From positions 3,067,538 to 3,131,537 of the forward strand of contig OZ037772.1 of the NCBI GenBank assembly GCA_964035545.1: a stretch of 64,000 nucleotides of DNA, read 5' to 3'. The stretch's first letter is position 1, and every line of letters starts with the position of its first letter. The notes under the pieces were generated by a model that worked only from the letters and a program-made list of their open reading frames with translations, did no database searches and had not been told where the DNA came from. The translations under genes were made by a program, and so were the position numbers. Source of the DNA: Bugula neritina. Its lineage: Eukaryota; Animalia; Bryozoa. This document shows, one piece after another, positions 15,078 to 36,473 of the stretch.

Positions 15078-16345
15078 AAATTACTAGTTTATATTACCAA
15101 GTTATATTACTAGTTTATATTACCAAGTTATATTACTAGTTTATGTTACCAAGTTATATTACTAGTTATTGTTACCAAGTTATATTACTAGTTTATGTTA
15201 CCAAGTTATATTACTAGTTTATGTTACCAAGTTATATCACTAGTTTATGTTACCAAGTTAAATTACTAGTTTATTTTACCAAGTTATATTACCAAGTTAT
15301 ATTACCAATTTATATTACCAAGTTATGTTACTAGTTTATATTACCAAGTTATATTACTAGTTTATGTTACCAAGTTATATTAACAGTTTATGTTACCAAG
15401 TTATATTACTAATTAATGTTACCAAGTTATATTACTAGTTCATGTTACCAAGTTATATTACTAGTTTATGTTACCAAGTTATATTACTAGTTTATATTAC
15501 CAAGTTATATTACTAGTTTATATTACCAAGTTATATTACTAGTTTATATTACCAGGTTATATTACTAGTTTATGTTACCAAGTTATATTACTAGTTTATG
15601 TTACCAAGTTATATTACTAGTTTATATTACCAAGTTATATTACCAGTTTATGTTACCAAGTTATATTACCGGTTTATGTTAACAAGTTATATTACCAGTT
15701 TATGTTACCAAGTTATATTACTAGTTTATGTTACCAAGTTATATTACCAGTTTATGTTACCAAGTTATATTACTAGTTTATGTTACCAAGTTAAATTACT
15801 AGTTTATGTTACCAAATTAAATTACTAGTTTATATTACCAAGTTATATTACCAAGTTATATTACCAGTTTATATCACCAAGCTATATTACTAGTTTATAT
15901 TATCGTGTTATATTACTAGTTTATATTACCAAGTTATATTACCAGTTTATGTTACCAAGTTATATTACTAGTTTATGTTACCAAGTTGTATTACTAGTTT
16001 ATATTACCAAGTTATATTACTAGTTTATATTACCAAGTTATATTGCTAGTTCATGTTACCAAGTTAAATTACTAGTTTATGTTACCAAATTAAATTACTA
16101 GTTTATATTACCAAGTTATATTACTAGTTTATATTACCAAGTTATACTACCAAGTTATATTACTAGTTTATGTTACCAAGTTATATTACCAGTTTATGTT
16201 ACCAAGTTATATTACTAGTTGATGCTACCAAGTTGTATTACTAGTTTATATTACCAAGTTATACTACCAAGTTATATTACTAGTTTATGTTACGAAGTTA
16301 TATTAGTAGTTTATGTTACCAAGTTATATTACTAGTTTGTGTTAC
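15078..16345. repeat. 26-bp satellite (TTATATTACTAGTTTATGTTACCAAG)n built from two 13-bp subunits
   Basis: Tandem array of ~1.25 kb. Confidence 0.97.
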
Positions 16346-16689
16346 AGCATTTTTATTTGTAGAGATAAAATTTATCAAAAGAGTTTCATACACTTGTATA
16401 TACTTAGACTCGGACTGTGTTGGTGTGTGTGTGGGGGGACTTTGCTCAGACACTTGCAAGTACGAGCTGTCATGCACACTTTGCAGGACGTGTCAAGGTG
16501 GCAGGTGCTTCTATCCGTGTACTGACAACACAGCCTGTCCTAGTGATGGACAGATCTGTCACCATGGTGTCTGTAAAGAGGGCTGTCGGGTGACTAGTCG
16601 CTATGACTTATACTGCGAGTTATTGATGACTTTCATACTATGAGTTATGACTACCTATTATAATTTATACTGCGAGACCAAGTAGTTGC

Positions 16690-16870: not shown

Positions 16871-17123
16871 ATTATCAAAAATAGCAAAGAAGTAGAGATA
16901 TGTTGTGTATGTGAGATATGTGAGGTTATTTAGTGACTAGTTCGCTATTTATAGAGTTTTGTTTCTATTAATAGACTGTACTGAAGATGAACAATGTGGA
17001 TCTGAGTTTACTGAATGCATATCCAACATATGCTATCAGCTTTATCCTCTCAACAATTCAGATCTTTCTGATGCTGAGCAGGACAGACTCTTTGATGATC
17101 CGCTGGACATATAGAATGATGGT

Positions 17124-17368
17124 AAGTTACTCTGTTAGTACAGTTACTCTGTTAGTACAGTTACTCTGTTAGTATAGTTACTCTGTTAGTATAGTTACTC
17201 TGTTAGTATAGTTACTCTGTTAGTACAGTTACTCTGTTAGTACAGTTACTCTGTTAGTATAGTTACTCTGTTAGTATAGTTACTCTGTTAGTATAGTTAC
17301 TCTGTTAGTATAGTTACTCTGTTAGTATAGTTACTCTGTTAGCTTAATTACTCTGTTAGTATAGTTAC
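17124..17368. repeat. 17-bp minisatellite (AGTTACTCTGTTAGTAY)n beginning at the splice donor
   Basis: Tandem array. Confidence 0.95.
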
Positions 17369-17609
17369 AGTAGCAGTTTGCTAGTCATAATAACTTGCAC
17401 TGTTAGCTGCTTAACTAGTTATTCTACATCTCTTGTAGCCACAACCAAAGTGGTGTCTATATATCCTGCTAGTGACTTGAGTAATGACTCATATGTCTCC
17501 TACAGTACGAGTGGTCAGCTTGCGGCAGTGTTGGAAGAGAGTGGAGACAACTTGGATCAGAGGTATAGGTATTGCTTAGTATAAGTTATACCATTACCAT
17601 ATATAAGCA

Positions 17610-19158: not shown

Positions 19159-19668
19159 CAGGGTTGGGGTAATTGTAATTTGTAATTGGTCGTATTTAAT
19201 TACATTTTTCCAAGTAATTGAATGTAATTTGTGATTGATGTATAAAAATGTAATTGTAATTGTAATTAATTACTTATCTAATGTAATTGATTTTTGCAAT
19301 AACTTTAAAATTACATCTCAATTACTTCAACCTTTTAAATCTTAAGAAATTCATTCTTTTTAACATGCCTACTGTTAAATAACAAATTCAGGTTAAGTCA
19401 ATGTAGTATAGTATCAGTGTTGAGAACAAAGGAGGTTCACCACTGTCAAAATTGCCCCTGCTAGTTGGACCCTAGAAGTGAAAATGCATAACTTCTATTT
19501 GTCCTTTGTGAGAACAAAAGTAATTGTAATTGTAATTAATTGCTTTACAATGTAATTTTGTAATGTAATTAATTACATTTATTTCAACTGTAATTATAAT
19601 TGTAATTTACAAATTCTCATGTAATTGTAATTAATTACATTCACATGTAATTGACCCCAACAACCCTG
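19159..19668 (-). mobile_element. hAT-type MITE copy 3 (510 bp, no nested insert, opposite orientation)
   Basis: Same TIR family; 8-bp TSD GTTTATTA at 19151-19158 and 19669-19676. Confidence 0.95.
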
Positions 19669-20744
19669 GTTTATTATGGAGCTCCTACTTATATTGTTCA
19701 AGGTCTAGATGTATTCTCCACCATGTTTTTGATAGAAGTAAACTTTAATTCGGTAATAAGTTTAAAATAAATTGTTTTTCATATTTTGCTGTTTATTATT
19801 GCCTGAGTATTGTAATGAGAATATTGGCTTCACAATGTCAGTGCAGCGATGTGATTGGTTTGACAATATCAATGCAGCGATGTGATTGGTTTGACAGTAT
19901 CAGAGTAGTGATGTGATTGGCTACTCTGTTCTGTTTTGCAGGGCCATGCCTGCTTGTATTATGTGGTAATCTTGTTTTGCAGTGAACAGAAAAGGAGAAT
20001 GGGTCCCAAAAGACACCCGGGATCTTACCATGGAGAGGAAGGGTTCACCCGATGTTGATGGCCTGCCTGGTATATCCGGCAATCCTGGACATGCAGGAGA
20101 AAGGAGACCACCTTGTTTCCCAGGAGATACCGGACTTTTTGGAGAACCAGGTGATGTTTACGCTCAATTGAGTTCAATCTGTCAAGTTATGTTGGGATCT
20201 TTTTCGTTTTCATTATTTTATGTTTGTTACGTGGAAAAAGGAAAAAACTCTGTCTTGGAGCATTTTGGTTTTTTCAGAGAGCTTTGGATTATTTGATTAT
20301 GGTCTACACAGGGGTGTAGACAGACTAAACTAGACAGGCGTGTAGACAGAATAAAATACACAGGGCTGTAAACAGACTAAACTACACTGGGGTGTAGACA
20401 GACTAGACTAACCAGTGGTCTAGATGGACTAAACCTACTACCAACTTACAATTACCTTGCGTCATGACGTCTCTATTCTCTCCTATTATTTGACTTTTAT
20501 CTAGCGAGCAGATTTCTAGTAGTCTATAGTGACCAGTCACACTGTTTATTATAGCAACATAGAAATCAAGTTATAAACTAGTTGCACTTGTTGTGATGCT
20601 ATCACTGGGTGCTTATAGGTAGAGATGGAGTACCTGGACCTGTTGAGATAGGATATCAGGGTAAACAAGGAGATCAAGGTCCTGCAGGTGAGAATGAGGA
20701 GTTACTCACCCTTGCTTGTGTATTTCTGTTCTTTTTAGGTATTC

Positions 20745-20983
20745 TATAATATGCTGGGGTTTCCCTCACAGCTATTATATATGCTGGAATTCCCCTCACA
20801 CCTATGATATATGCCGGGGTTTCCCTCACAGCTATGCTATATGCTGGGGTTTCCCTCACAGCTATTATATATGCTGGAATTCCCCTCACACCTATGCTAT
20901 ATGCTGGGGTTTCCCTCACAGATATTCTATATGCTGGGGTTTCCCTCACAGATATGCTATATGCTGGGGTTCTCCTCACAGCT
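20745..20983. repeat. 30-bp minisatellite (ATGCTGGGGTTTCCCTCACAGCTATGCTAT)n, ~8 copies
   Basis: Tandem array; overlapping ORFs are repeat artefacts. Confidence 0.95.
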
Positions 20984-23900
20984 AGTCTGCACTAAGGCAG
21001 GGAGTAGGCTAAGTAATCATATTAAATCCCAGCAGTGCTTGTTACTTCAACTGGCAGGATTACTGTGTATGATAGTTACTCTGACTGGTTTTCATGGATC
21101 ATTTTTACCATATTGTTTGCCACATGATGCATTGTCTTAGTAAAAACAAGAAAACAAAGAAATATACCAGAAATGTTGAGAAATGTGGTGTTCCAGAATT
21201 AATAAATGACCACTTGTAATGCATACTGGTGCTGCTTGGTTCATAGGACCTGTGGAACAAGCTGGAGAACCTGGTCTGGATGTTAGAAATGGAAAGACAG
21301 GAGAAACTGCACAAACTGGTATGCCTGGTCCAACCGGCTCAAGGGGGGTCACTGGAGAACCCGGATCTGATGGAAGGTATTTTTTGTGCTTTACTCTACC
21401 CTATTCAGCTTCTTGGAACTTTTTATTTGATTTAGTTTTTATAATTTGTTGTCAATTTTTTCAGAGACGGTTTACCTGGAGTACTGCGTGCTGATGGTAG
21501 ACCTGGGGAGCAGGGTGATCAAGGAGACAAGGGTGATAAGGCAGGAACATTCTTTATTCAGTTTTCTATTTATTTCAGTTCTCTGGTTTTCCACTAGTCA
21601 ATCCTGTAGTTGTTTATTTGTTTTAGTTTATTTATGTTAATACTAAAGTTGCTTCAGTGACATCACATGATGTAATATATTACACAACAGTACAGTATAA
21701 TACACCATAATATAATATGTTATACAATACAATAATATTACAGAAAATATAATTTACTAAAATCTCACAGCTAAGGCGTGTCTCCTAAATATATTCATTA
21801 CTATAGGGGCCAGCTGGGCCACAGGGTGCTTCTGGACCAACTGGATTGTCTGGGCCAACTGGTCCTCAGGGACCCCACGGAGCTTCCGGGAATTCCCGGC
21901 GAACAAGGACCTAAAGGTATGAATTAAGTTGAACCTATCTTTGTCCTTAGTTATTGGCCATCAACAGAATCTTGACTCTAAGAGTTATCCTTCTTGGTAA
22001 GAAGGTAAGGCAACTCCTAACTCATGATAATATGAATATCATCTGTAAGACCCACTGGTTTCCAGGGACCGCAGGGATTCCCCGGAGCTCCCGGTATTGA
22101 TGGTGAAAGGGGAGATGTCGGACCAGTGGGTATTGCTGGACCACCTGGGCTACGGGGTGCAGACGGCAAACAAGGAATTATTGGTTCTCCTGGTGCTGTG
22201 GGTGCTATGGGACCACCTGGACCTGATGGTGCTAAGGTAAACACTTACACTGCTAACAGGTTATTGTCACTCATCTTGTTAGTTTAGTGGTAATAAACCA
22301 ATAGTCTGTATTTCTAGGGTGAACAAGGGAGAGATGGGGAAATGGGTAGTCCTGGCAGACCTGGACCTCCTGGACTTCCTGGTGAAGCCCCATTATTTGG
22401 TTAGTTATTAGCAAAACCAAGTTATTGTCCATTACTTGTATCTTTTTCATTCTCTTTCAACTGTGTTTTGGTAATATTTTGGGAATTTCATCCATAGCTT
22501 GTGATTGAAGCTTTGATTTTATTCTACCACGGGTTATGTTAGGTGCGCCCCCTATGATGATGAGCCAATGATGTCCAACTGTAAAGGTGTACAAGCTGAT
22601 GATGCAGGCGCCAACAATGAGCTCTATAATATGTACCTCAGTGAGTAATGGCCATGACGTGCTTTGATGTTGCCTGCTTTGTAGCAGAAAGGCTCTTTTA
22701 AATGCTGTTTTGGAACTCAAATGACGGACCTGTTTCAAATTGTTTGTATGTTCAATTTGCAGACAAACAATTTTATAATTTACTGCTAGAAACTATTGTA
22801 ATAAAAATATAGACAGCTGTTGTAATGTGTTTCTCCTCCTAGCATTGATGATTGACATTCTTGTTTGATGAGTCGCTTATTTAGTTCGCTTCTTCAGTCA
22901 AATGTTGCTACATTCTGACATATCATATAATGTTGGTTTTATTGCTGTTAGCTTACATAACTACTTCTACCTTATTTCTCTAGAAACAAAAGTAAGGGAT
23001 GGGTCCAAAGACAGCCCTGTTAGAGACTGTAGAGAACTCTTTACTGAAAACCCAGAGTTCAAGAGTGAAACTTATTGGGTGAGAGAAGATGCTGATATGT
23101 TTCTATTTTCTCTGCTGTATGGATTGTAGTTTGAGTATCTGGCAGAGTTTTCCTAACTCAACTTTCTTCAAATTCACTCTGAGAGAGCAAACCCAGACTG
23201 ACAGGCAATAGTCACTGCCAACAGTTTATCAAATAGTCACTAGTTGCTAGTCACCAGATACTAGTCCTCTACTATGTTGCTAGTCACTTGATAATCTGAA
23301 CAATCACAGGCCTTTTTAAAGCTGAGCAAGTTGTTGGCATGACTATTCCATTTGCTGATTGTAGATGTATAAACTCAGTGGCAGTAGAAGACGCATATGG
23401 TAGGAAGAATAAGTCAGTCATTTTATATACAGCTGGTGATAAAGAATACACAGCAACAGATAGCAGGTTCCAATATTCTGTGCTGCAGGATGATTGCAAG
23501 GTATGTAAATCTGACCTATATACTGCAAATCTGACCTATAAAGTGTAAATCTAATTTATATGGTGTAATTTCGATCTGCACTTGAACATGATTGCGATAG
23601 TTGCATCTTTTTTCTGTTAATATGCAATATAGCTTGCCTTTGAGTCTTTTTAATAACTACTTATGACTTCAACCCAAAAGCCACTTTGAGTGCTGTACGA
23701 GTTTAGAGTTTTGAGTTTGCCCTCTGCCATTTTGTAGTATGCCAAATCATCAGAAGCTCAGACAGAGATTGACACCAAGACCGCCACCCACTTGCCTATT
23801 ATTGACATTGCTCCTGGTGACATCGGGACCACCCACAAAGAGTTTGGGGTTCAGCTAGGGAGGGTGTTATGCCCCTCCCTGTGACTTTATATATTTAGAA

Positions 23901-24256: not shown

Positions 24257-24412
24257 TTATCCTTATGCAGCCCAGAGAGAAACTCAGTCATCATGAACTT
24301 CAATGTAAATAATTTTAATATAAAATAATACATATTATGATATAATATAATATTATATTACTCTTTCGGGATAATTATTCTATTTATACTAACACCTGTT
24401 TATTTGAAGTAC

Positions 24413-24952
24413 TGTAGTGAGTAGTGCAAGTACAAATACAGGAATCGCCCTCTCCCTACTCTTGGAATACTTAGACTCTTATGTAGCAACCAATTAGCAG
24501 CTCCGGAAGATATGCTTCCGAGTCACGTGACATTTCCCGGGTTATTAACATTATATCACGTTGTTGTAAGCGGAGGCTTGTAGTAGTAACATGTGTTAGT
24601 AGTGGACTCTTGTATAGAATAATTGATGTGATGTTTGGTTTAAGCCCTGGCCACACGATCGTGAGAATCACACGAAATCGTCTATTTGACACGAAAAAAC
24701 ATTCGTACGAGAAAATTTGAAGGAATTCAAACGAAATCGTCATCGTTGGGTGTGCACAACGATGACGATGGACGAAAAATCACAATCGACGATAAGTACC
24801 ATTTGATTGGTCAATAGACTTTTAGCAACAGTGATTATTTCATTTCTACTAAGTTTCTCTATTTGGCAATGTTCTGCTGCTTGTATCTCGTGCAAGACTC
24901 ATTCACGGACTAATAAAAATGACTTGTTGCCATCAAAGTGGTATATATTAAG

Positions 24953-25032
<80 letters not shown>

Positions 25033-25636
25033 GCACGCCAAATAATTACTACAAATTTCAAAAATAGCATAAATTAAGTAGTATTACTATGCCTATTTGT
25101 ATCCAATTTACTAGTCTTACATTTATAGCAACTGTAAAGTATTTTGCGTAAAATAGCTATTGCAAGCATTATTCAATTCATATCCACATGGTAATCACAG
25201 CGAAGCTTAAACTTTATAGCTTTGTATTTACGTGCATGAGTGAGTTTTAATTTTTTTTTAATTTTATATGCATAAAAATGTTTTTAAAAACTTTACCAAT
25301 AAACAAAACTAAAAAAATGTACACATAAAATACCAAAAAAATAACAAAAATGGCAAAATTTTTCCTTTATAACTTATATAAACTTGCGGTACCAATCTCG
25401 GCATAATGACTTTTCGTTTAAACGATCATGTGGCTGGTCAATACGAAAAGATAACTCACGAATAATCGTCACACGAGTTTCGTGTCATTCTCACGATCGT
25501 GTGGCCAGGGCTTTATGCTTTATTGTGAATAATAAATACACTTACTCGACAGCTACCTTAGTAATTGATAACAGAATAACCAGCTAACTATACGCAAGTA
25601 AATAACTCACGCTCAGTAATTGCGCAAATTACTACA
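24413..25636 (+). repeat. 5' LTR (351 bp plus Harbinger MITE)
   Basis: Matches the 3' LTR except one substitution (tgtataGAat vs tgtataGGat) and the MITE; contains CCAAT, CCGGAAG, GTCACGTGAC (24522-24531) and AATAAA. Confidence 0.96.
24643..25512. mobile_element. PIF/Harbinger-type MITE (870 bp) inserted in the 5' LTR; contains (TA)n at 24955-25028
   Basis: 26-bp perfect TIR AGCCCTGGCCACACGATCGTGAGAAT; 3-bp TSD TTA; the empty site is present in the 3' LTR. Confidence 0.95.
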
Positions 25637-25637
25637 G

Positions 25638-25655
25638 TGGTGGCAGCGGTGGGAT
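25638..25655 (+). promoter_or_regulatory. Primer-binding site complementary to the tRNA-Leu 3' end
   Basis: TGGTGGCAGCGGTGGGAT lies 1 nt after the LTR and is complementary to ...ATCCCACCGCTGCCA-CCA of eukaryotic tRNA-Leu. Confidence 0.88.
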
Positions 25656-25671
25656 CTTGCGTATAGCAGCC

Positions 25672-26622
25672 ATGGCAGAAGACGGCACGGAGCTACCCAT
25701 TCCACTGAATGAAGGTGAGAGAGATAATGTTGATATACCTGTGGAACCAGTGGTGTTAGATGAAGAAGTGAGAATTCTTAGAGAGCATGGTGAAGATAGA
25801 TACCGGCTGAAGGCGCCCAACTTCACTGGCGAAGAAGCAGTGGAGCAGTTCATCCAAGAATTCCAGGATGTGATGGAGATTGCAGAATGGCCGCCAAGGG
25901 TGGCGTTGCTAAAGCTCAGGATGGCGTTGACGGGCAAAGCTAAGCCGTACGGAGCTGGACCTGACATAGACGGAATCTTTGCTTCCCTGCGGGCCCGTTT
26001 TGGCATCTCTCCCATAGATGCGCGGGCCCGTCTACAGAGGATGCGGCGTGATCCTCACACGTCACTAGAAGAGCACGCTGCCACGGTGTACCCATTAGCG
26101 CAGATTGCATTCCGCGATCTGCCTCCGGTACACCGTGAGAGGTATACCTATGATGCCTTCGTGCAGTCCATCAACGACTTGGGGCTCCACCATCAACTCC
26201 AAGCGAGGGGAGTCACCACAGTCGAAGATGCACTTGCGGTGGGAGAAGCCTATCTCTTGGCGACTCATATGCACCGCAACCGCGTGGCCTCCCGCCAGGT
26301 GACCACGGAGCACTCTACTGCTCACACCGAATTAAATGCGGAACCCCCCGCGGTGGCTAGTGTGAACCAGATGTCACTAGCGTCAAAAATCTCACAGATG
26401 TCTGACATGCTAGATAAACTGGTCACCACATTAGCCTCCCCAAGCCAGGTAGATACTGCCCGTGAGCCTTGCGGGCCGCAGGTACAATCACCAGGCATGG
26501 GGCACCATTTCTGCTGGGAATGCGGAAGGCCAGGACATTTCCAGAGAAACTGCCCTCAACTCCCACCAGGGTTAAACTACCCCGGCCCGCAGATGTTCCC
26601 ACCTCCTGCGGGCCGTCTGTGA
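25672..26622 (+). CDS. gag: Gag (capsid-like region plus CCHC zinc knuckle)
   Basis: ATG at 25672; KAPNFTGEEAVEQFIQEF..W capsid-like motif; CWECGRPGHFQRNC knuckle; ORF uninterrupted. Confidence 0.93.
   Translation: MAEDGTELPIPLNEGERDNVDIPVEPVVLDEEVRILREHGEDRYRLKAPNFTGEEAVEQFIQEFQDVMEIAEWPPRVALLKLRMALTGKAKPYGAGPDIDGIFASLRARFGISPIDARARLQRMRRDPHTSLEEHAATVYPLAQIAFRDLPPVHRERYTYDAFVQSINDLGLHHQLQARGVTTVEDALAVGEAYLLATHMHRNRVASRQVTTEHSTAHTELNAEPPAVASVNQMSLASKISQMSDMLDKLVTTLASPSQVDTAREPCGPQVQSPGMGHHFCWECGRPGHFQRNCPQLPPGLNYPGPQMFPPPAGRL
26571..26615 (+). promoter_or_regulatory. Putative -1 ribosomal frameshift signal
   Basis: G_TTA_AAC in the gag frame, 5-nt spacer, then a perfect 10-bp stem CGGCCCGCAG/CTGCGGGCCG; the -1 frame is the pol ORF. 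Confidence 0.8.
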
Positions 26623-28829
26623 ATCACCCAGGGAGGCCCGCGCGTCTGTCGCCCCGCTGGGCGCCGCGCGGAGATGCTGTGAAGTGGCGACCCCCGCGGC
26701 AAGTAGGCTCAAGCCACTCGCCGCCTGGGTCCTCTACGCCACTCCGGCACCAACACGGAGCCGGCAGACGGTTGACCACAGAGCCTGCGAGGGAAACGGT
26801 ACAAGCGCCGCAAGGCGTACTGCCCCAACCTCGGCAGCTGGTCAATAGTCGCCGCCAACCGTGGACCCCTCGACCCACAGCGAGGGAGGTGCAACCACGG
26901 CACACTCAATTGCAGCCGCACGGAAGTAGCTACTTCCTGCCAGGGAAGTTAGCCGGCAAGCCTGCCAACTTCCTCCTGGACTCCGGCTGCACCACCAACC
27001 TCCTTAGCCGTCAGTTCTTTGACACCCTCAGCGCTAAGGTCAAGGACAGGTTGGCACCGTACGAGGGGGATCATGGCACCTTGGCAGACGGGTCGTGCAT
27101 TCCCTTCTACGGCATTATTGAGCTAACTGGTTACGTCCGTAACCAGGCCATCCAGGAGACGTTTATCGTCGGGCAGCTCAACGAGGATGCTATCCTCGGG
27201 ATGCCATTCTTACAACGACACGGTTGTCGCATCGATTTCAGTAAATCTGCGATAATCATGGGCGACAAGGAGCTCGCTTGTGTCGATAAGTTTGGTCGTC
27301 CTCTAGCGGGAGCAGTGCAGGTAGTACGGAGCTGTACTATACCAGGCCTCTCCCGGGCTACCGTCCGCTGCAAGGTAGACGGTGGCCAAACCTCTAAGTT
27401 GGGAGTTGTCGAAAGTACGCACTCGAGAGTCCAACTTGCCCGTAGTTTTAGCCGGCTCACAGGGCAAGGAGAGATCTCAGTGCAGTGTGTCAACCCCTTC
27501 TCAGAGACAGTAGACCTACCACCCAGATCCATGCTGGGTCGCTTCCATCCTGTCCAGGAGGAAGCCATTGGGCCGTCGTCGGGAGCTACGACGGAAGGTC
27601 CTCAACAGAGCCCGTCTCAAGGGCGGAGGACCGTCCCAACCCACGCCTCCCCCCCTCCAGGGACGCGTGGCTGCACAGGCAACGGGAAGCGCCAGGCTAT
27701 GGCTAGGTTGCCACATGGGTACAGTGAGGCGTTCAGCCACACAGACCACGGAGCCCGCCTAAATAGAGCAGGCTGCCGTGAGGTACCGCGGGCGGCGAGG
27801 ACCGCCCCTGCTCAGCCACTTCAACAGAGGGCTGACACGCCCCCGGAGGCTGCCCAGAGCCTCCGCGCCAAACCTGTATGGGCTGGTAACGTTAGGGAGC
27901 TGCCGAAACTCCAGGAATGCCTTCCTGGGGTGGTAGCCGACGTGTACCGAGCGAAACAGGAGGGGCGACGACCCAGTAGTACACAACGGCGACAGGGATG
28001 CGCCGAGTTACGGCTGTACTGTCAACGTTGGAGCTCTCTGCGGGTCGGGCCAGATGGTCTGCTAACCATGACCTTGGCCACCAACAGCAGACAGCCAGCC
28101 AGGAAGAGGGTTGTCTGCCCAGTTGCCATCCGCCGGAAGTTGATACAAGACACTCACGAGGAGACTCACGGAGGAGTCCAAGGGGTGGTCACCAAGCTAC
28201 AACTCCGGTGGTACTGGCCTAACATGGAACGGGATATCCGACGCAGAGTGAGACGGTGCAAAGTCTGCCAGACCAACAAGCATAGCCGTCTCCCTGGTGA
28301 AGCGGGGCGGCAGACGCATTGTGCGAGAAGGTCTCGGCAGGCGGAGACTGTCAACCTGGCCGGAAACACCTCCATGACACGTCAGGAAGACTTGGCGAGG
28401 CGAGAAAGGCCACTTCCGTCCTTGAAAGTGCGCCCACCGCCCCCAACGTCAAGCCTGCCATCATCACCACTTCCGGAACCAGAAACAGGTCCGGAAGTGC
28501 AAAAACCCCCCGTGGGAGGGGCTCCGCAAGGAGATGCCAACATAGGACTAACACCACACACTAGGCAACTTCCAGCGTGTCTCAAAGACTGTGTACGTGA
28601 CCGCGGTATAAGCGGCAGTAACAAAAGTCTAGAGAGGCCTCGCGTGGGAAAACAGGCAAAGAGCCGTGGGAGTTGTGATCACCACGAGAATCTCAACTTT
28701 TGCCTCGGCGGAATCTCACACGAGATTCATCCGCTGGAAGTGAAAAGCCCTAGTCACGTTTCACAACCACGCTGTCCGGTCTTTTCCTATGTTGATGCAG
28801 TCGAGAGTAGACGTGCCAGTAAACAGTAA
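26571..28829 (+). CDS. pol: Internally deleted Pol: Pro/Arg-rich linker, aspartic protease, degenerate pre-RT stub, integrase H2C2 zinc-binding domain; no RT, RNase H or DDE core
   Basis: FLLDSGCTTNLL..AILGMPFL protease; THEETHGG..WYWPNM..CKVCQ; no LPFG/YxDD motif; start of rve degenerate (AETVNLAG). Confidence 0.9.
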   Translation, partial: VKLPRPADVPTSCGPSVNHPGRPARLSPRWAPRGDAVKWRPPRQVGSSHSPPGSSTPLRHQHGAGRRLTTEPARETVQAPQGVLPQPRQLVNSRRQPWTPRPTAREVQPRHTQLQPHGSSYFLPGKLAGKPANFLLDSGCTTNLLSRQFFDTLSAKVKDRLAPYEGDHGTLADGSCIPFYGIIELTGYVRNQAIQETFIVGQLNEDAILGMPFLQRHGCRIDFSKSAIIMGDKELACVDKFGRPLAGAVQVVRSCTIPGLSRATVRCKVDGGQTSKLGVVESTHSRVQLARSFSRLTGQGEISVQCVNPFSETVDLPPRSMLGRFHPVQEEAIGPSSGATTEGPQQSPSQGRRTVPTHASPPPGTRGCTGNGKRQAMARLPHGYSEAFSHTDHGARLNRAGCREVPRAARTAPAQPLQQRADTPPEAAQSLRAKPVWAGNVRELPKLQECLPGVVADVYRAKQEGRRPSSTQRRQGCAELRLYCQRWSSLRVGPDGLLTMTLATNSRQPARKRVVCPVAIRRKLIQDTHEETHGGVQGVVTKLQLRWYWPNMERDIRRRVRRCKVCQTNKHSRLPGEAGRQTHCARRSRQAETVNLAGNTSMTRQEDLARRERPLPSLKVRPPPPTSSLPSSPLPEPETGPEVQKPPVGGAPQGDANIGLTPHTRQLPACLKDCVRDRGISGSNKSLERPRVGKQAKSRGSCDHHENLNFCLGGISHEIHPLEVKSPSHVSQPRCPVFSYVDAVESRRASKQ

Positions 28830-28852
28830 TCAGATACCACTTTCATTCCAAA

Positions 28853-29900
28853 ATGTCTTACTATTCTGGATCGAAGGGTGAGTTAATTATGTTTTTGGTA
28901 CGATAACTAGACTGCATCAGTCAGCTACACTAGCTAGCTGGAGATTCGATAATGATAAACAGTGGTGGGAATACACGTCGACTTTGATTTTAAATAATCT
29001 ATCATAGCGAGTGTGTTCTCCATCAACTATTCATTAGCCTGAATCTCACGAGTGTAACTGAACAGAGTACCGGTCAGGCTGTACACGCCGACGGTGCCTC
29101 AGTGTATAATCTTTAACACTGCTACTCTTTCAGATCACACTCGAGTGACCACCTCCCGGTCACGGGACCAGCCAACCTCTCTGTCTATGGAAGAAGAGCC
29201 TGTAATGGAGAATGGCATACCAGTAGTACTCCGCCGACGACACCGTTGGGTGTCACCCATGACAGAGAGGAGAATTGAAGAAGCCTGGGGACCCAGTGGA
29301 CCACACCGAACCTGCCAGGTCTGCTTTGAGGAGTGCCCGTCGCACCGCTCCTTGCGTTTACATGTAGATGCCCATTTCCTACTCCACTTCTGTCCCTGCG
29401 GGTTCCACGACGTCTACCCGTATCCCGTGACAGTACATAAGCTAAGCTGCTTCGCCGGAGAGAACCACACTGTTGATGAAGACAGTTTCCCCCTATACCT
29501 GGATGCCATCAAGCCAGTCATCAGGAAGGCTATTACCCTGGCCGCACTAACGTCAGGGTTTCACGTACTGTTACTATCTGCCCGCCATAAGTCCCCTATG
29601 GTTCAGGGCCCACCTCCTACCCCCGTCAACCCTAGCAACACCCCAGAAGTAGAAGAAACAACCATATCCCGTATAACGGAGACCCCTATAACCCCACCAA
29701 GACCTAGCCAGCTGGCTAACGTAGAAGAGCGGCTTCTAAGACTGCAAGCCGAGTTCACACAACTTGCCCCTGACTTGCTGGATACGACGACAGGTCTATA
29801 CCAGTTGAAGGACTCAGTGGGACGACTGAAGAGGCGGCTACGGGCCCGACAGGCTCGACACAGAGCACGGTCGCTACAAGAAGCAGAGTCCAACCAATGA
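28853..29900 (+). CDS. Accessory ORF3: putative spliced gene (exon 1 28853-28877, exon 2 29134-29900) encoding a C2H2-like zinc finger and a C-terminal coiled coil with basic tail
   Basis: aaATG MSYYSGSK, G|GTGAGT donor, ..TCTTTCAG| acceptor, phase 1 joins in frame; CQVC-x12-H-x3-H and CPCG..H..C; LANVEERLLRLQAEF..LKDSVGRLKRRLRAR heptads. An unspliced alternative start is ATG 29187. Confidence 0.78.
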
Positions 29901-30179
29901 GAATGCCTGGGGTAGGCACCTTCGTTGAGCTATAGCTCGTTTAGGATGTGACGAGCGCTCCGACATTGGCCCGCGTGCTGGTAAGCACCCTCTCTCTTAA
30001 TAGCTGACTAGATGTGTGTGATCGATCACCCTGTTGTCTTCTAATGTAAACGTTGTCGTGTTTAACTATTTCTTTTCTTACTCTTTGTGGGTTTACTTAT
30101 GAATATTTCCTTTTTGGATTATTGTATGGTTTTTCATTATGTTTTTTTATTGTGTTATCAGAAAGTAGGGCTTTCTGCT

Positions 30180-30190
30180 GGGGGGGACGG
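30180..30190 (+). promoter_or_regulatory. Polypurine tract
   Basis: GGGGGGGACGG directly before the 3' LTR. Confidence 0.85.
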
Positions 30191-30541
30191 TGTAGTGAGT
30201 AGTGCAAGTACAAATACAGGAATCGCCCTCTCCCTACTCTTGGAATACTTAGACTCTTATGTAGCAACCAATTAGCAGCTCCGGAAGATATGCTTCCGAG
30301 TCACGTGACATTTCCCGGGTTATTAACATTATATCACGTTGTTGTAAGCGGAGGCTTGTAGTAGTAACATGTGTTAGTAGTGGACTCTTGTATAGGATAA
30401 TTGATGTGATGTTTGGTTTATGCTTTATTGTGAATAATAAATACACTTACTCGACAGCTACCTTAGTAATTGATAACAGAATAACCAGCTAACTATACGC
30501 AAGTAAATAACTCACGCTCAGTAATTGCGCAAATTACTACA
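30191..30541 (+). repeat. 3' LTR (351 bp)
   Basis: TGTAGT...ACTACA, followed by the TSD GTAC. Confidence 0.97.
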
Positions 30542-30672
30542 GTACTTTAATAAGTTTTACTTTAAATTTATTTCTCAAACCAGCATGTCAGTTAAATATA
30601 AAAGTACAATCACACATACAACATGTAGACATGTAGTGATATACATTATAAAACATATTATGTTGGTGAAAC

Positions 30673-32222
30673 GTTATACAGTATATTATGTTATACAGTA
30701 TACTATGCTATACAGTATACTATGTTATACAGTATATTATGTTATACAGTATACTATGTTATACAGTATACTATGTTATACAGTATATTATGTTATACAG
30801 TATACTATGTTATACAGTATATTATGTTATACAGTATATTGTGTTATACAGTATTTTATGTTATACAGTATACTATGTTATACAGTATACTATGTTATAC
30901 AGTATATTATGTTATACATTATACTATGTTATACAGTATATTATGTTATACAGTATATTATGTTATACAGTATATTATGTTATACAGTATAGTATGCTAT
31001 ACAGTATAGTATGTTATACAGTATAGTATGTTATACAGTATACTATGTTATACAGTATATTATGTTATACAGTATATTATGTTATACAGTATATTATGCT
31101 ATACAGTATATTATGCTATACAGTATAGTATGTTATACAGTATAGTATGTTATACAGTATAGTATGTTATACAGTATATTATGTTATACAGCATATTATG
31201 TTATACAGTATTTTATGTTATACAGTATATTATGTTATACAGTATGATATGTTATACAGTGTATTATGTTATACAGTATACTATGTTATACAGTATACTA
31301 TGTTATACAGTATATTATGTTATACAGTATACTATGTTATACAGTATATTATGTTATACAGTATAATATGTTATACAGTGTATTATGTTATACAGTATAC
31401 TATGTTATACAGTATACTATGTTATACAGTATACTATGTCATACAGTATACTATGTTATACAGTATATTATGTTATACAGTATATTGTGTTATACAGTAT
31501 ATTATGTTATACAGTATACTATGTTATACAGTATACTATGCTATACAGTATATTATGTTATACAGTATACTATATTATACAGTATACTATGTTATACAGT
31601 ATATTATGTTATACAGTATACTATGTTATACAGTATATTATGTTATACAGTATATGGTGTTATACAGTATTTTATGTTATACAGTATACTATGTTATACA
31701 GTATACTATGTTATACAGTATATTATGTTATACATTATACTATGTTATACAGTATATTATGTTATACAGTATATTATGTTATACAGTATATTATGTTATA
31801 CATTATATTATGTTATACAGTATACTATGTTATACAGTATATGCTATGTTATACAGTATATGCTATGTTATGCAGTATATTATGTTATACAGTATACTAT
31901 GTTATACAGTATATTATGTTATACAGTATACTATGTTATACAGTATACTATGTTATACAGTATATTATGTTATACAGTATACTATGTTATACAGTATATT
32001 ATGTTATACAGTATATTATGTTATACAGTATACTATGTTATACAGTATATTATGTCATACAGTATATTATGTTATACAGTATATTATGTTATACAGTATA
32101 CTATGTTATACAGTATATGCTATGTTATACAGTATATGCTATGTTATACAGTATATTATGTTATACAGTATATTATGTTATACAGTATACTATATTTTAC
32201 AGTATATTTTGTCATGCAGTAT
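30673..32222. repeat. 17-bp satellite (TATGTTATACAGTATAY)n, ~90 copies
   Basis: Tandem array; the long Y/I/V-rich ORFs are artefacts. Confidence 0.98.
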
Positions 32223-33465
32223 ACAATCATTCACCACCATGTCAGTCAAATAATATAATATAAAGTATATTATGTATAGCAACAGCTGGGCTGTGGTGAA
32301 ACTCTACCAGTCTAAATTCTTACATGCAGACATGCATATTTAATTAATTCAAACATTTTAAAAATGAACTTAAAACTCAAGAATTTAAAATATGAAACAA
32401 AATAATGTGTCCTATAAAAATAGCACAGCTTCTTAGAAGCAAGTATTTTACACTTGAACATGCAGAATTTGTACAGCTTATAATGATGACATTGTTGAAT
32501 TGATACACACCTCTGATTGGATGAGTTTTACATAATAAAACAATTGTTCATCACTTTTATTATTAGTCTAAGGTTGACAATAATTTACACTGTTATAGTT
32601 ATTGGTTGTAAACTGATTAATTCATCATTAAGTACTTGTTTGCTGCTGCCTGGTTTATCACTGCTCATCATGATTTTAATAACAAGGAAATTATCTTCTC
32701 CTGTTGTCTCCAGGTGCTACTGTATTTGACAGGTTTCCCTGTTATTAAAGTAATTTTATACTGTTACTGATGACATCCACAAATACTTGTGTAGGGAAAC
32801 AATTGACCTTTTTCTACAACAGGAAAAGAATTGGTAAGACACGTACTAATAATATTACATACTTTATTTCATCAATTCACTTATCCTTAATCTAATTGAT
32901 TAAAAGCTATTTGCATGTAGGCTATTTTATAAATTGTTCTTAAAACTAATTTGGGTGTACCTATACAATACTAGGTTTATATGACTGTAGTATATTGCTG
33001 AGTGCACATGGGCAGTGTCAATAATTATAGTTACTGTAGACTTTGCTCTTAGTGATCTGGTTGGAATAATTTACAGTCCAGTTCTTCGTGATGGAAAATT
33101 TTTATCTGCGGAGCAACTCTAATTGAGAAACTGTTATCTAAAGTTTGTTACTTCAAGTACTATAAAAATATTATTAGCAGCTTGACATTTGTTATCATTA
33201 AGGAGTGTTAAATATAAATATAATACTTGAGATAAACATTCTCATGTGATATACTGCAACCTAAAGTTATATCATATGACTTGACTATCTCTACTAGAGT
33301 TAGGGTGGGTCACCTGACAGCCCACACATATCCATACACTACAACACATACTGTAGGAACACTGGCACAGCTGAGGCTAGGCTGACTAATAAGTATGGAG
33401 TAGTTGACCCAGCAGTTAGATACTTTGTTATAGAGACTTTAACTTTCTAGTAGTAGAAATAAAAG

Positions 33466-33867
33466 CAAGAGTGTCCAACCTTTTCAGAGCGAGGGCCACT
33501 GCATGAAAGCAATTAATACTTCATGACGAAGGCCATATTGGACACGTTAGCTTGCTCTGATAGCCACAGCATCAGCATTTTTAAATTTACTTTATTCCAA
33601 ATTCCTATAAATCGCTACACAATAAAGTTCCAATAGTTACTGTTTTATAGCATGTGTATAAGTAAGACATTAGAAAGATAGCTTCTCACTCTAATCCATG
33701 TATACATGTGAAATATTGTTTTAGTTTTTTGCCTTTGAGGGCCACATATAAATGTAGGTTGGGGGCCACTTAAATGTAGGCTGGGAGCCACATAAATGTA
33801 GGCTGGGGGCCACATAAATGTAGGCTGGGGGCCACATCCGGCCTGGGCCGCCTGTTGAAAAGCCCTG
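33466..33867. mobile_element. Old hAT-like MITE with internal 22-bp repeats (GGGGGCCACATAAATGTAGGCT)
   Basis: Ends CAAGAGTGTCCAAC...GTTGAAAAGCCCTG resemble degenerate hAT TIRs; TSD not conserved. Confidence 0.55.
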
Positions 33868-34509
33868 CTTTAAATAGTTGGTATATAAGTATGCCAGTGA
33901 CCTAAAATTTAATGGTCACTCTAGTGTTACTCTACACTTAACACAATTCAAATATTGTATATAATAATCTACTATACTCCATTAGTATAGTATAGTAATT
34001 GTAACCACCTGCAGGATGGTCACATGACCACTGCTACTTCTCAGACAGTTCACTAAATGACAGAATGAGAAGAATGATGGCTGATCAGATGTATAATAAC
34101 ATAGTTTATCAGTTCACTTGAAGTCTTAAATTATTTTTGTTGAAAGTTAGTTGCTTGCATTTTAAAACTTGTTAATAAAACTATTATAACTATACAATAG
34201 TAGGTTTATATGTGACTGCAATGGAATATTTACAATGAAATTTACAGTCCAGTTCTTCGTGATGGAAATTTTTTATCTGCAGAAGAGCTCTAACTGAAAA
34301 ACTGTTATCTAAAGTTTGTTACTTAAAGTACTATACAAATATTATTAGCAGCTTGACATCTGTTATCATTAAGGAGTGTTTAACATAAATATAATACTTG
34401 AGATAAACATTCTCATGTGATATACTGCAACCTAAAGTTATATCATATGACTTGACTATCTCTACTAGAGTTAGGGTGGGTCACCTGACAGCCCACACAT
34501 ATCTACACT

Positions 34510-35543
34510 GGTGTCAGGTGATAATGGTACAATTGGCAAAATAGGTAAAACTATATAGCACATTTTTAATATTAAGGTTTGAGGCAGGTTAAGTAGTTAA
34601 GAAGGAGTTAAGGTTTGAGAATGAGGTTCTTAGTTTGGGGTTTGGGTTTTGAGTTTGTGGTTTACCCTCCTAATTACGCTTAACGTATTGTACGCCATAA
34701 CAGCAAATTTCAGCCATTCCTGGTATAAGTTGCAGCGTTAATCAAGCACTGCTTGGCTCAAAAAATCACACCAGGCAGAGTTGATATGGTACTATAAAAT
34801 TTAAAAAATACTTTCCGCTGGTTTGTTTTAATCGCTTATTGTTGATTTAATTTAATAAATTCAAAAGTTTCAAAGGTATAAAATATCTTTTTCCCCTTGC
34901 TTAAATTAAATTCAGCTTAAAAATGTAGATTTCACTAATTACTAAAGTATGCAAACCAACAATGTAAAAATTAATTGGACAGCTTAAATATTTTTCTTAT
35001 TCAAATTAGTTTGCACAATTATATATTTAATGGACACATATATTTAAAGGAGAGGTTTCTTTTTTTAAATGCTTTTATCTAGTCAATAACATTAATATCA
35101 CATTTTTTGAAAATAATTTTGCAATAATTTGTAAATAACATTCAAAGGAGTACAAGTAACCGCAGACAAGAATTAACCTTATTATGATTGGTCATAGCTC
35201 AACGTCATGCGTTGTACTTTTCTCAGTGTGTGACGCATGCCGAACAAACGTAACAGCAGGGCAATTTTATGTTTACCGTATGGTAAATGTGAATAAGGGG
35301 TTAGAGTTGAGGGTTTGAGTTTGGAGTTTAAGAAAACTTATAAACACCAGTAAGCCATTTTTTCCTGCTAGGCTTTTTCCATTTGTGCCCTTGATACCAG
35401 AACCATTATTACCTGCGTGCCATTCTACCTGCGTGCCATTTTATTTGTGCCATTTTATACCTGTGCCATTTTACCTGTGCCATTATTACTTGTGCCATTA
35501 TTATACCTGTGCCATTTTCCCTCTGCCATTATTACCTAAAATC
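34510..35543. mobile_element. MULE-like MITE with GGGTTT/GAGTTT and TGTGCCATT subterminal repeats
   Basis: Interrupts copy 2 of the triplicated segment; imperfect TIR (AGGTGATAATGG / CCATTATTACCT); 9-bp near-TSD ATCTACACT/AACTACACT. Confidence 0.7.
34665..35300. mobile_element. Harbinger-like MITE nested in the MULE-like element
   Basis: TTA flanks; ends CCCTCCTAATTACGCTTA../..GTAAATGTGAATAAGGGG; a homologous left end lies at 51994-52110. Confidence 0.65.
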
Positions 35544-36473
35544 AACTACACTACATCACATGCTGTAGGAACACTATGGCACTCTAATTGAAAAATTGTT
35601 ATCTAAAGTTTGTTACTTCAAGTACTATACAAATATTATTAGTAACTTGACATTTCTTATCCCTAAGGAGTGTTTAACATAAATATAATACTTGAGATAA
35701 ACATTCTCATGTGATATAATGTAGCCTGAAGTTATATCATATGACTTGACTATTTCTACTAGAGTTAGGGTGGGTCACCCCACAGCCCACACATACAACT
35801 ACACTATACACCACATACTGTAGGAACACTGGCACAGCTGAGGCTAGGCTGACTAATAAGTATGGAATAGTTGACCCAGCAGCTATATACTTTGTTATAG
35901 AAACTCTAACTTTCTAGTATTAGAATATAAATAATTCTCTAAAGAGTTGGTATATCAGAAAGAGAGTCACTCAACACCAATTAACTTGGTTGTCTCAATC
36001 AGAGCTGGTCTCTGTGTAGTTCAGTTTGTTTTAAAGGTTCTCTGAAGCTTCCCCAGTCTTTATGAGCTCTCTTTAGATATATACAATAGTTTTAATACAA
36101 TACAAAGACAATTATTGTTAACACATGTCAAGTAATACAACAGGAATAAGGCCTCTCTGGTAGTTATTTGAATATCTACAAGAAGTATAACTAAATATAC
36201 AATAATAACTACATATCTAGAAACATGCAGAATATTATACTTGAATAAATCTCTTGTAACAAAGTATTGTTACATAACTGGAAAATAGAGAAACTATATT
36301 TCACAATTCAGAACACAATCTGCAATCAGCATTCAGTGCTGAAATTAAGCAAAAGCGATGACAGTTGTTATATGAATATAATAATATCATGATGTAAATA
36401 ATGATAATGATATTATATTCATATACCAAATGTCATTGCAGTTCCCTAAGCCAAGCATAACTGGTTATTGTAT

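Follow-up and report, generated by a model that had tools for sequence, protein, structure and literature searches.

The window analysed here is a 64,000-nucleotide stretch of the Bugula neritina genome, and all features described below lie on its + strand, except for one nested element to which no strand is assigned. At positions 24413-30541 the window carries an LTR retrotransposon, which measures 5.26 kb without this nested insert. The element is flanked by a target-site duplication, GTAC, found at 24409-24412 on the 5' side and as the same 4 nt at 30542-30545 on the 3' side. The 3' LTR (30191-30541) is 351 nt long and runs from TGTAG to CTACA. The 5' LTR is divided into a left part (24413-24642, LTR positions 1-230, with the TGTAG start) and a right part (25516-25636, positions 231-351, containing AATAAA and the CTACA end). 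The left part matches 30191-30420 with one difference at 24618, and the right part is identical to 30421-30541. Between the two parts lies an 870-bp MITE-like TIR element (24643-25512) with perfect 26-bp TIRs and a TTA target-site duplication (24640-24642 and 25513-25515), which splits the LTR at position 230, between a TATA-like motif and AATAAA. It has no counterpart in the 3' LTR or in the LTRs of the related loci L002 and L010, and does not belong to the retrotransposon family. The LTR pair differs at 1 of 351 nt (A24618 versus G30396), a figure that is valid only once the nested 870-bp element is taken out; the insertion is recent. The first-pass annotation had already described LTRs with this single difference and an intact target-site duplication, primer-binding site (PBS) and polypurine tract (PPT). 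All of these were found, but the 5' LTR turned out to be split, and since the TIR element disrupts it the present copy may be poor as a source copy.

The PBS, TGGTGGCAGCGGTGGGAT at 25638-25655, adjoins the 5' LTR. It is conserved in all RT-less copies of the family, with one substitution in L007 and no change in the others, and its first 11-18 nt are common to the RT-bearing relative L003 and to a second element in L007. The primer is presumably tRNA-Leu(AAG)-like, and a search of the window for a matching tRNA gene found none. At the other end, a conserved block (30158-30190) ends in the PPT, GGGGGGGACGG at 30180-30190, next to the 3' LTR; it is kept in RT-bearing L003 and in RT-less L006. 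Hence the hallmarks of Ty3/Gypsy elements are present, namely TG...CA LTR ends, a short target-site duplication, a PBS adjoining the 5' LTR and a PPT adjoining the 3' LTR.

The first gene, gag (25672-26622), encodes 316 aa including a CCHC knuckle at 26512-26553 (Pfam zf-CCHC, E=5e-5), and in a comparison of the Gag capsid with solved structures the knuckle alone gave a match. A putative -1 frameshift signal lies near the end of gag at 26571-26614. It consists of the heptamer G_UUA_AAC (26571-26577), a 6-nt spacer and a 9-bp GC stem, in which 26584-26592 pairs with 26606-26614. We take GUUAAAC to be a proven slippery site in equine arteritis virus. The heptamer is the same in all copies including RT-bearing L003, with the exception of L008, which has lost it through an 18-nt deletion. 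The stem is retained across copies, with G-U changes in L001. Folding of the region gave a z score of only -1.6, and conservation across copies is better evidence for the predicted signal than this folding score.

In the -1 frame relative to gag, a pol-remnant ORF of 786 codons extends from 26469 to 28829, about 750 codons of it beyond the slip site, as the first-pass annotation had stated. The other two frames of this region carry 24 and 32 stops, and in 500 dinucleotide shuffles the longest open run averaged 153 codons and never exceeded 354. Pfam matches on the ORF were limited to Asp_protease_2 and Integrase_H2C2. The former (aa 158-247) marks a retropepsin domain at 26940-27218, with the motifs DSG at 26979-26987 (aa 171-173) and ILGMPF at 27192-27209. 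The latter (aa 551-606, E=1e-14) marks an integrase N-terminal HHCC zinc domain at 28119-28286, with HEETH at 28155-28169 and CKVC at 28257-28268; the two H and the CxxC are retained in every aligned RT-less copy. As predicted for a check with domain profiles, Pfam found no RVT, RNase H or rve domain in the ORF. Likewise, when RT, rve-core and full-length pol sequences were used as tblastn queries against all frames of the 64-kb window, no homology to RT, RNase H or the integrase core was found. The reading frame indeed passes from protease and a pre-RT stub straight to the integrase zinc domain. The order protease (PR), integrase zinc domain (IN-Zn) and integrase C-terminus is kept, whereas RT/RNase H and the integrase core are missing.

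Both deletions can be located against L003. The pre-RT stub, LPHGYSEAFSHTD at 27708-27746, and the RT/RNase H junction occupy 27708-27833, with the junction itself at about 27801-27827. About 1.37 kb is absent here, of which 90 bp are due to a secondary deletion restricted to the subfamily of this copy. The RT deletion proposed earlier was therefore seen, but the junction present in this copy is that of the secondary, nested deletion. The integrase core is reduced to a degenerate start, which shares the segment 28344-28409 with the junction of the core deletion (about 28380-28392); about 0.9 kb is absent here. In ETVNLAG (28344-28364) an Asn replaces the first catalytic Asp seen in autonomous relatives (VDLVG), in agreement with the degenerate rve start noted from the letters alone; among copies this position drifts between D and N. 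The integrase C-terminal remnant (28393-28829) follows in its native frame and matches, by tblastn, the L003 frame that carries SH3_Tf2-1. Both junctions keep the native reading frames of L003 and are thus in frame, as claimed.

A third coding region, ORF3, has its coding exon at 29134-29900 and more than 120 homologues in the family. Its message consists of gag codons 1-14 joined to the ORF3 exon. The splice donor AAG/GTGAGA (25714-25716) ends exon 1 at 25714, one nucleotide after gag codon 14, and the acceptor CTCTTTCAG/A (29120-29134) opens exon 2 at 29134, which is the junction seen in L009. This locus is a genomic copy missing exactly the GT...AG interval, and because it is a precise intron-less copy it proves the splice of gag codons 1-14 onto ORF3. 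The donor GT is retained in 6 other aligned, intron-containing RT-less loci (L001, L002, L005-L008), and the acceptor AG in L003, L006 and L007; the donor stretch found no match in RT-bearing L003. The extra gene described by the first-pass annotation is present, but it is a family gene expressed by splicing and, since L003 also has it, not an addition of the RT-less lineage.

In the ORF3 protein, a C2H2-like finger (29313-29375) is followed by a second Cys/His cluster (29388-29450); the protein also has a Pro-rich linker and, at its C-terminus, a coiled coil (about 29712-29880). An AF2 model (mean pLDDT 68) gave a helical bundle and a long coiled coil. In Pfam, no family passes for ORF3. The best Foldseek match of the fold against the PDB had E=2.9 and was a mere local C2H2-finger resemblance, and a sequence profile search of the PDB found nothing. 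An exhaustive profile search returned only family members and distant homologues of the N-domain, among them uncharacterised proteins of the bryozoan Watersipora, with sub-threshold C2H2 hits. The model and motifs suggest that ORF3 combines zinc fingers with a coiled coil. An env identity was considered and rejected: no signal peptide is apparent, the N-terminus is acidic, the maximal Kyte-Doolittle 19-aa mean is 1.43 (1.1-1.24 in homologues) and no Pfam family matches.

Related loci were retrieved as contigs encoding homologous proteins; they are short metagenome contigs and can be chimeric. A scan of a metagenome-contig collection with the PR-to-end protein returned nothing, and this collection apparently lacks the samples holding the relatives. 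At least 6 other RT-less loci, 74-99% identical, have the deletion architecture in common, and 5 of them come from Bugula neritina samples. L002 and L010 match the present copy at about 98.8% identity and are colinear with it through both junctions. L001, L006, L007 and L008 are 74-80% identical and carry the RT-deletion architecture, and three of these, L001, L007 and L008, are also colinear across the rve junction; other copies with the same two junctions, which the first-pass annotation had proposed to look for, do exist. L005 clusters with the RT-less copies; at the DNA level its match to the window ends before the junction, and its protein P0011 crosses the RT junction, as do at least 8 further distinct RT-less proteins (at least 9 in total) with the same residues. 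The pol-remnant frame is open for 722 codons in L001 and for at least 514-629 codons in L005, L006 and L008, despite 20-26% divergence. Not all copies keep the whole remnant: P0010 is without the entire IN-Zn region, and L006 has a further, frame-breaking deletion in the post-protease part. The RT-less sequences form a single clade nested among RT-bearing relatives (support 100/98, and 100/99 without the stub), and they have a single origin. The first-pass annotation had suggested that the deleted form has long been replicating and did not arise by one deletion after insertion, and the shared junctions and the nested clade bear this out.

The closest RT-bearing relatives, L003, P0028 and P0029, have the order PR-RT-RH-IN with Gypsy-type Pfam domains (RT_RNaseH, Integrase_H2C2, rve). 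RT-bearing relatives from the same samples have the PBS, PPT block, LTR termini and frameshift heptamer in common with the RT-less copies. The LTRs of L003 are 98-99% identical, and the RT-bearing lineage was therefore active in a similar time frame; L003 itself is frameshifted. An autonomous partner with similar LTR and PBS had been anticipated, and RT-bearing relatives do share these signals, but an intact full-length helper pol was not found in the same samples, where RT-bearing ORFs reach at most 735 aa, a result limited by the shortness of the contigs and by the length range that the search covered.

Selection was assessed by NG86 dN/dS, and the values are rough because dS reaches 0.6-1.0 in some pairs. 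Within the RT-less clade, pairwise omega was 0.21-0.28 for gag overall and 0.11-0.14 for its core, and 0.09-0.38 for the protease. ORF3 gave 0.18 against L006, and a wrong-frame control gave 1.2-1.3. These estimates show purifying selection on gag, PR and ORF3 within the RT-less clade. Recent changes between the window and L002 were 7 synonymous and 2 nonsynonymous in gag, and 5 and 2 in the PR-stub region. Further downstream, omega was 0.36-0.66 for the stub, 0.34-0.98 for the segment after the junction and 0.46-0.75 for the C-terminal remnant, where the confidence interval includes 1 and 5 of 5 recent changes against L002 were nonsynonymous. For IN-Zn the values were noisy (0.12-1.8), with several pairs at 0.12-0.39. 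In the dN/dS check proposed with the first-pass annotation, gag, PR and ORF3 thus all fell far short of 1, but constraint on the integrase remnants appears weak or inconclusive, so that retention of IN-Zn for a reason is only a possibility.

Might the RT and integrase-core deletions be private to this copy, made in one step at or after insertion in an otherwise full-length family? A single copy would not distinguish this, and two in-frame junctions arise by chance in about 1/9 of cases. However, both junctions recur in L002 and L010, the RT-deletion architecture in L001, L006, L007 and L008 and a colinear rve junction in L001, L007 and L008, all within one deep RT-less clade. Since copies 20-26% diverged share the junctions, we regard this explanation as refuted. 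Spread of the RT-less form as DNA, by segmental or tandem duplication or gene conversion rather than by retrotransposition, is very improbable. The circularly permuted contig L010 has the order ORF3-LTR-gag-pol that a tandem array would give, and L002 holds two copies head to head. A permuted contig is, however, what assemblers usually make of an LTR element present in many copies, and the upstream flank of L002 is unlike that of the window. Furthermore, the present copy has its own 4-bp target-site duplication and near-identical LTRs, and L006 likewise carries a pair of LTRs, which are 97% identical. The precise intron-less copy in L009 requires an RNA intermediate and hence also argues against spread as DNA.

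The selection estimates themselves could be borrowed. Retroelement RT recombines co-packaged RNAs, and template switching or recombination with autonomous relatives might refresh gag and PR or re-create RT-less forms, so that the proteins of the RT-less elements need not function. L009, whose LTR pair was not confirmed and whose two ends are unlike each other, could mark such a recombinant, and mosaics are possible in metagenome data. We consider this unlikely. The RT-less PR region is monophyletic (support 100/99, stem branch 0.19), which would not hold under frequent exchange, omega stays below 1 in pairs where both members are RT-less, and the RT-less sequences have the junction residues in common. 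A stronger contender, to which we give somewhat less than an even chance, holds that only gag, protease and ORF3 matter, and that the approximately 540 post-protease codons are a functionless passenger, left open by the young age of the source copies and a GC-rich sequence. The omega ranges after the junction, in IN-Zn and in the C-terminal remnant (whose interval includes 1) fit this explanation, as do the drift of the catalytic Asp between D and N, the exclusively nonsynonymous C-terminal changes against L002, the loss of IN-Zn in P0010 and the frame-breaking deletion in L006. It is harder to reconcile with frames of 786, 722 (L001) and at least 514-629 codons that stay open at 20-26% divergence, when shuffles reach 354 at most, with HHCC residues kept in all aligned RT-less copies and with the several IN-Zn pairs at omega 0.12-0.39.

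We therefore favor, with a probability of roughly 80%, a young insertion of a long-lived non-autonomous Ty3/Gypsy-type lineage in Bugula neritina, whose deleted form has persisted by borrowing enzymes from relatives. In-frame deletions would have stripped an ancestor of RT/RNase H (about 1.3 kb) and of the catalytic core of integrase (about 0.9 kb), and the deleted form would have gone on transposing and diverged into subfamilies that are now 74-80% identical to the present copy. LTR-driven genomic RNA would yield Gag and, after a -1 slip at G_UUA_AAC before the GC stem, a fusion of roughly 1050 aa that joins Gag, protease, the integrase zinc domain and the integrase C-terminal remnant. A spliced subgenomic RNA (donor 25714, acceptor 29134) would give the first 14 Gag codons fused to ORF3, a probable accessory protein found throughout the family, also in RT-bearing members. 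With its own Gag and protease, the element would assemble and mature particles around its RNA. With RT and integrase core lost, the missing enzymes must come from relatives, and RT-bearing family members that recognise the same PBS, PPT and LTR ends would supply RT/RNase H and integrase. The first-pass annotation had proposed a trans-mobilised lineage with its own capsid and protease; selection and shared cis signals support this, as do, indirectly, the young LTR pair and target-site duplication of a copy that has no RT and the intron-less retro-copy, while the act of mobilisation, co-packaging with a helper, the identity of that helper and any role of the integrase remnants are what we infer. 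More tentatively, the lineage may persist stably as a satellite of an autonomous Gypsy family, having lasted through a long diversification thanks to its own Gag particle, its own protease for maturation and the accessory protein from the spliced RNA, with the HHCC and C-terminal modules kept not as relics but as adaptors recruiting helper RT-IN into its own particles, a possibility that we rate as rather doubtful.

If true, Bryozoa, whose mobile elements are to our knowledge almost undescribed, would harbor a retroelement with its own capsid and borrowed enzymes, akin to a satellite virus. The RT-less lineage in itself offers a natural dissection of functions needed in cis (capsid, protease, accessory protein and frameshift ratio) and of those open to borrowing in trans (RT, RNase H and the integrase core). 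The two deletion junctions and the splice junction can serve as markers when bryozoan genomes are annotated; without them, copies of this kind would be labelled as broken Gypsy elements.

The usual picture of a non-autonomous LTR element is that of a non-coding shell (LARD, TRIM, ETn) or of an element with Gag alone (TR-GAG). LARD and TRIM are LTR-bounded, PBS- and PPT-bearing non-autonomous derivatives that are non-coding by definition. The present element falls outside this definition, as its gag, PR and ORF3 are open and under purifying selection. Expression of a third ORF from a spliced RNA with the donor just inside gag is known for env of Gypsy/errantiviruses and for retroviral subgenomic mRNAs. 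The likeness to errantiviruses extends to the acceptor upstream of ORF3, but ORF3 is not env-like; splicing-based expression of a third, non-env ORF is thereby documented in an invertebrate Gypsy family through a retro-copied spliced RNA. TR-GAG elements of plants are shorter than 4 kb and have a single ORF coding for GAG only (PMC4350172). They resemble the RT-less lineage as non-autonomous LTR elements with a Gag ORF and without pol enzymes. The bryozoan element nevertheless does not fit their definition, being 5.26 kb long, of animal origin and equipped with PR, a frameshift signal, remnants of the integrase N- and C-termini and a third ORF expressed by splicing. In the mouse ETn/MusD pair, a coding-competent relative mobilises ETn, the two having LTR and cis sequences in common, and ETn causes most of the documented germ-line insertion mutations of the pair (PMC6466679). 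ETn lacks coding capacity, whereas the RT-less lineage has three ORFs and at least 3 products under purifying selection. In the mouse IAP subtype I-delta-1, the most active one, an in-frame deletion makes a novel Gag-Pol fusion ORF that acts in cis, and the element requires proteins in trans from full-length relatives (PMC6466679). Both are deleted, trans-dependent, non-autonomous LTR elements with a Gag-Pol fusion. IAP I-delta-1 is, however, a vertebrate betaretrovirus-like ERV that loses part of gag and pol while RT and IN remain; the RT-less lineage has intact gag and PR, has lost RT/RNase H and the integrase core, and is much more diverged (74-80% nucleotide identity between subfamilies). 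The element is a parasite of a parasite of a known kind, and a clear animal example.

The RT-less LTR retrotransposon at 24413-30541 of the window retains gag (25672-26622, 316 aa), which encodes a CCHC knuckle, and a pol-remnant ORF (26469-28829) that is open in the -1 frame. Within the gag/pol overlap lies the heptamer G_UUA_AAC (26571-26577), with a 9-bp GC stem (26584-26592 paired with 26606-26614) 6 nt 3' of it. The heptamer was unchanged in all related copies, including the RT-bearing metagenome contig L003, the sole exception being the RT-less locus L008, where an 18-nt deletion takes it out. Its flanks are variable across these copies and the stem is retained, with G-U changes in the RT-less L001. 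As the first-pass annotation had stated, the pol frame is free of stops for ~750 codons 3' of the slip; the remaining two frames contain 24 and 32 stops, and in 500 dinucleotide shuffles the longest open run averaged 153 codons, with a maximum of 354. Pfam searches of this ORF recovered a retropepsin (aa 158-247, containing both DSG and ILGMPF) and Integrase_H2C2 (aa 551-606, E=1e-14) and no further domain. RT, RNase H and the rve core were absent from every frame of the 64-kb window, as had been predicted.

Breakpoints were placed by alignment to the RT-bearing P0013/L003 (63% aa identity over the protease and the stub, the remnant before the RT) and to the full-length pols P0028 and P0029 (35-37% identity). 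Window 27801|27827 corresponds to L003 6835|8209, with ~1.37 kb of RT/RNase H missing. The integrase core is missing immediately after the motif with the first catalytic Asp, where ~0.9 kb is gone and the junction lies near 28380-28392. Here the window reads ETVNLAG-NTSMTRQED and relatives read VAVDLVG-PMPETNRGN, in agreement with the earlier description of a degenerate rve start with a replaced Asp. Since the window frame on either side is the native frame of the L003 ORFs, one with the integrase HHCC zinc domain (IN-Zn) and one C-terminal with SH3_Tf2-1, the claim that both junctions are in frame is correct.

A protein search returned 39 relatives, nearly all from two JGI samples and all on short metagenome contigs. 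The sister copies L002 and L010, with unbroken LTRs, 98.8% internal identity and 96% in the LTR, were colinear with the window across both junctions, so that copies of the kind the first-pass annotation had proposed to look for exist. Five further RT-less loci (L001, L005, L006, L007 and L008) match the window at 74-80% identity. The RT junction is crossed by at least 9 distinct RT-less proteins with identical residues there. Among the diverged RT-less copies, all that reach it carry ~90 bp (30 aa) there that the window and L002 lack; the window subfamily therefore has a secondary, nested in-frame deletion. L001, L007 and L008 align colinearly across the rve junction, where L006 has an additional small deletion. 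L006 is bounded by LTRs of its own (97% identity), its gag and ORF3 are open, and its pol frame stays open across IN-Zn. Both deletions belong to the lineage and not to the window copy alone. In a maximum-likelihood tree of the protease-to-stub region, every RT-less sequence fell in one clade (support 100/98), nested among RT-bearing sequences with the P0013/L003 group as nearest, and a repetition on aa 146-380, excluding the stub, recovered the same clade (100/99). The RT-less sequences have a single origin. With junctions common to copies 74-80% identical, and path lengths inside this clade of up to ~0.5 substitutions per site, the view that the deleted form has long been replicating is supported.

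Some relatives are further rearranged. The 470-aa P0010, aligned to window pol aa 212-502 and 642-786, is an RT-less variant that also lacks the integrase zinc domain, a further reduction step within the lineage. At L002:1-151 lies the 3' end of a further copy from this subfamily in reverse orientation (insertions head to head), and the order ORF3-LTR-gag-pol in L010:1-4770 reflects either tandem copies with an LTR in common or a circular permutation by the assembler.

We calculated Nei-Gojobori dN/dS for pairs in which both members are RT-less, so that the entire path postdates the deletion. With NG86 values approximate where dS > 0.6, dN/dS was 0.21-0.28 for gag overall, 0.11-0.14 for the gag core (aa 61-210), 0.09-0.38 for the protease, 0.36-0.66 for protease-to-stub, 0.34-0.98 for the post-junction segment, 0.46-0.75 for the integrase C-terminal remnant (CI touches 1) and 0.18 for ORF3 (window versus L006); a wrong-frame control gave 1.2-1.3. 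Thus, among the genes for which the first-pass annotation had suggested this comparison, gag, protease and ORF3 lie well below 1, but IN-Zn is short and noisy (0.12-1.8). The window and L002 are 1.2% apart; they differ in gag by 7 synonymous and 2 nonsynonymous changes, in protease-stub by 5 and 2, and in the C-terminal remnant by 0 and 5. The HHCC residues are kept in all aligned RT-less copies, and the orphaned catalytic Asp varies between D and N. Overall, the deleted lineage has clearly preserved gag, protease and ORF3, and may or may not have preserved the integrase remnants.

ORF3, which had been listed as an extra gene of the RT-less element, is indeed present and under selection, but it is also carried by the RT-bearing L003 (52-55% aa identity, split over two frames), and more than 120 distinct homologues occur in the same samples. 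ORF3 is thus not confined to the RT-less lineage. In the protein alignment the N-domain, with a C2H2-like CxxC-x12-HxxxH and another Cys/His cluster, is conserved, as is a coiled coil at the C-terminus; the Pro-rich linker between them varies. A moderate AlphaFold model (mean pLDDT 68) gave no structural match, and ORF3 had no family match. Hydropathy gave no sign of a membrane anchor, and we therefore do not regard ORF3 as env-like. Two proteins of another bryozoan, Watersipora subatra, annotated as uncharacterised, P0284 and P0333 (XP_067940964.1, XP_067944745.1), are distant homologues of the N-terminal zinc-finger domain and are candidates for either host genes or element ORFs.

The ORF3 homologue P0052, which starts with the N-terminus of Gag, lies on contig L009. 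That contig matches window 25630-25714 and then passes straight to 29132-30544; L009:829-2283 is a genomic copy from which the GT...AG interval separating gag codon 14 from ORF3 is precisely absent. The donor is AAG|GTGAGA (exon 1 end 25714) and the acceptor CTCTTTCAG|A (exon 2 start 29134), and the exons join in frame as Gag codons 1-14, Asp and ORF3. The acceptor AG is conserved, L003 included, and the donor GT is shared by the other six aligned RT-less loci that contain the intron, L003 being unmatched there; conservation of the ORF3 frame extends 5' of its first internal ATG. The direct join at these points identifies L009 as a retro-copied, spliced subgenomic RNA. It shows how ORF3 is expressed, from a spliced RNA, and also that RNAs of the family are reverse transcribed. 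In L009 the 5' LTR does not resemble the 3' LTR, and the element (by recombination) or the contig may therefore be chimeric; the splice junction itself cannot be an assembly accident.

Direct-repeat search and sequence reading of the window yielded a pair of 351-nt LTRs, the 3' one at 30191-30541 (TGTAG...CTACA) and the 5' one in two parts (24413-24642 and 25516-25636) with 870 bp between. The reported 1/351 difference (A24618 versus G30396) holds, but only once this insert is removed. The TSD, PBS and PPT were found as described: GTAC lies on either side of the element (24409-24412 and 30542-30545), the PBS TGGTGGCAGCGGTGGGAT (25638-25655) lies one base 3' of the 5' LTR, and the PPT GGGGGGGACGG directly abuts the 3' LTR. 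We take the PBS to match the 3' end of eukaryotic tRNA-Leu(AAG); the 64-kb window contains no tRNA gene. The internal region has 54-60% GC in a landscape of 26-41%. The insert (24643-25512) is a MITE-like element whose 26-bp TIRs (AGCCCTGGCCACACGATCGTGAGAAT) are perfect and which is flanked by a TTA duplication; it sits between a TATA-like motif and the AATAAA of the LTR, probably within R. Since it is missing from the 3' LTR and from the L002 and L010 LTRs, it is a still younger insertion into the window copy. Being younger than an LTR pair with a 1/351 difference, it shows its DNA-transposon family to have been active very recently. The window holds no second copy. Between the window copy and these sisters, LTR divergence (~3.5%) exceeds internal divergence (~1.2%).

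The surroundings are unusually dense in minisatellite arrays with units of 11, 13, 17, 19, 20, 23, 30 and 35 bp (209-728, 14946-16400, 17091-17430, 20719-21014, 30531-32260, 44459-44773, 46225-46977, 47612-48300 and 51418-51739); a 17-bp array starts ~90 bp 3' of the 3' LTR. Tandem units of ~1.3 kb, 85-92% identical, occupy 990-3780, with inverted partial copies 16 kb away (19169-19557), and a second set of three ~1.2-kb units lies at 33068-35802; both are unclassified repeats. A 180-aa ORF in AT-rich DNA (41310-41852, forward strand), without Pfam match, is possibly a host-gene exon.

RT-bearing relatives that share cis signals with the RT-less copies, as a trans-mobilising partner would, were found. 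L003 and the RT-less copies show conservation of the PBS, the LTR termini and a stretch of 33 nt that ends with the PPT. A second, more distant RT-bearing relative adjoins the RT-less copy on L007 (7960-11674; gag 46% and protease 63% aa identity to the window), and its LTR 3' end (…CACTACA) and PBS nearly match those of the window. The L003 LTRs are 98-99% identical, which indicates that insertions of RT-bearing relatives date from a comparable period. However, L003 pol is frameshifted, these samples contain no RT-bearing ORF >735 aa, for which short contigs and search length limits may account, and full-length pols with 67-69% RT identity came from other samples, so that the putative helper of the RT-less lineage is one that we infer rather than identify.

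Almost no mobile elements have been described from Bryozoa, and a literature search gave no relevant paper. ETn, LARD and TRIM elements are non-coding, and the window element falls outside the LARD/TRIM definition. It also falls outside that of the plant TR-GAG elements, which keep Gag alone (PMC4350172). The closest working analogue is mouse IAP I-delta-1, in which an in-frame deletion created a novel Gag-Pol fusion acting in cis, and which depends on full-length relatives and shows high activity (PMC6466679). The window element is best classified as a non-autonomous Ty3/Gypsy derivative with coding capacity.
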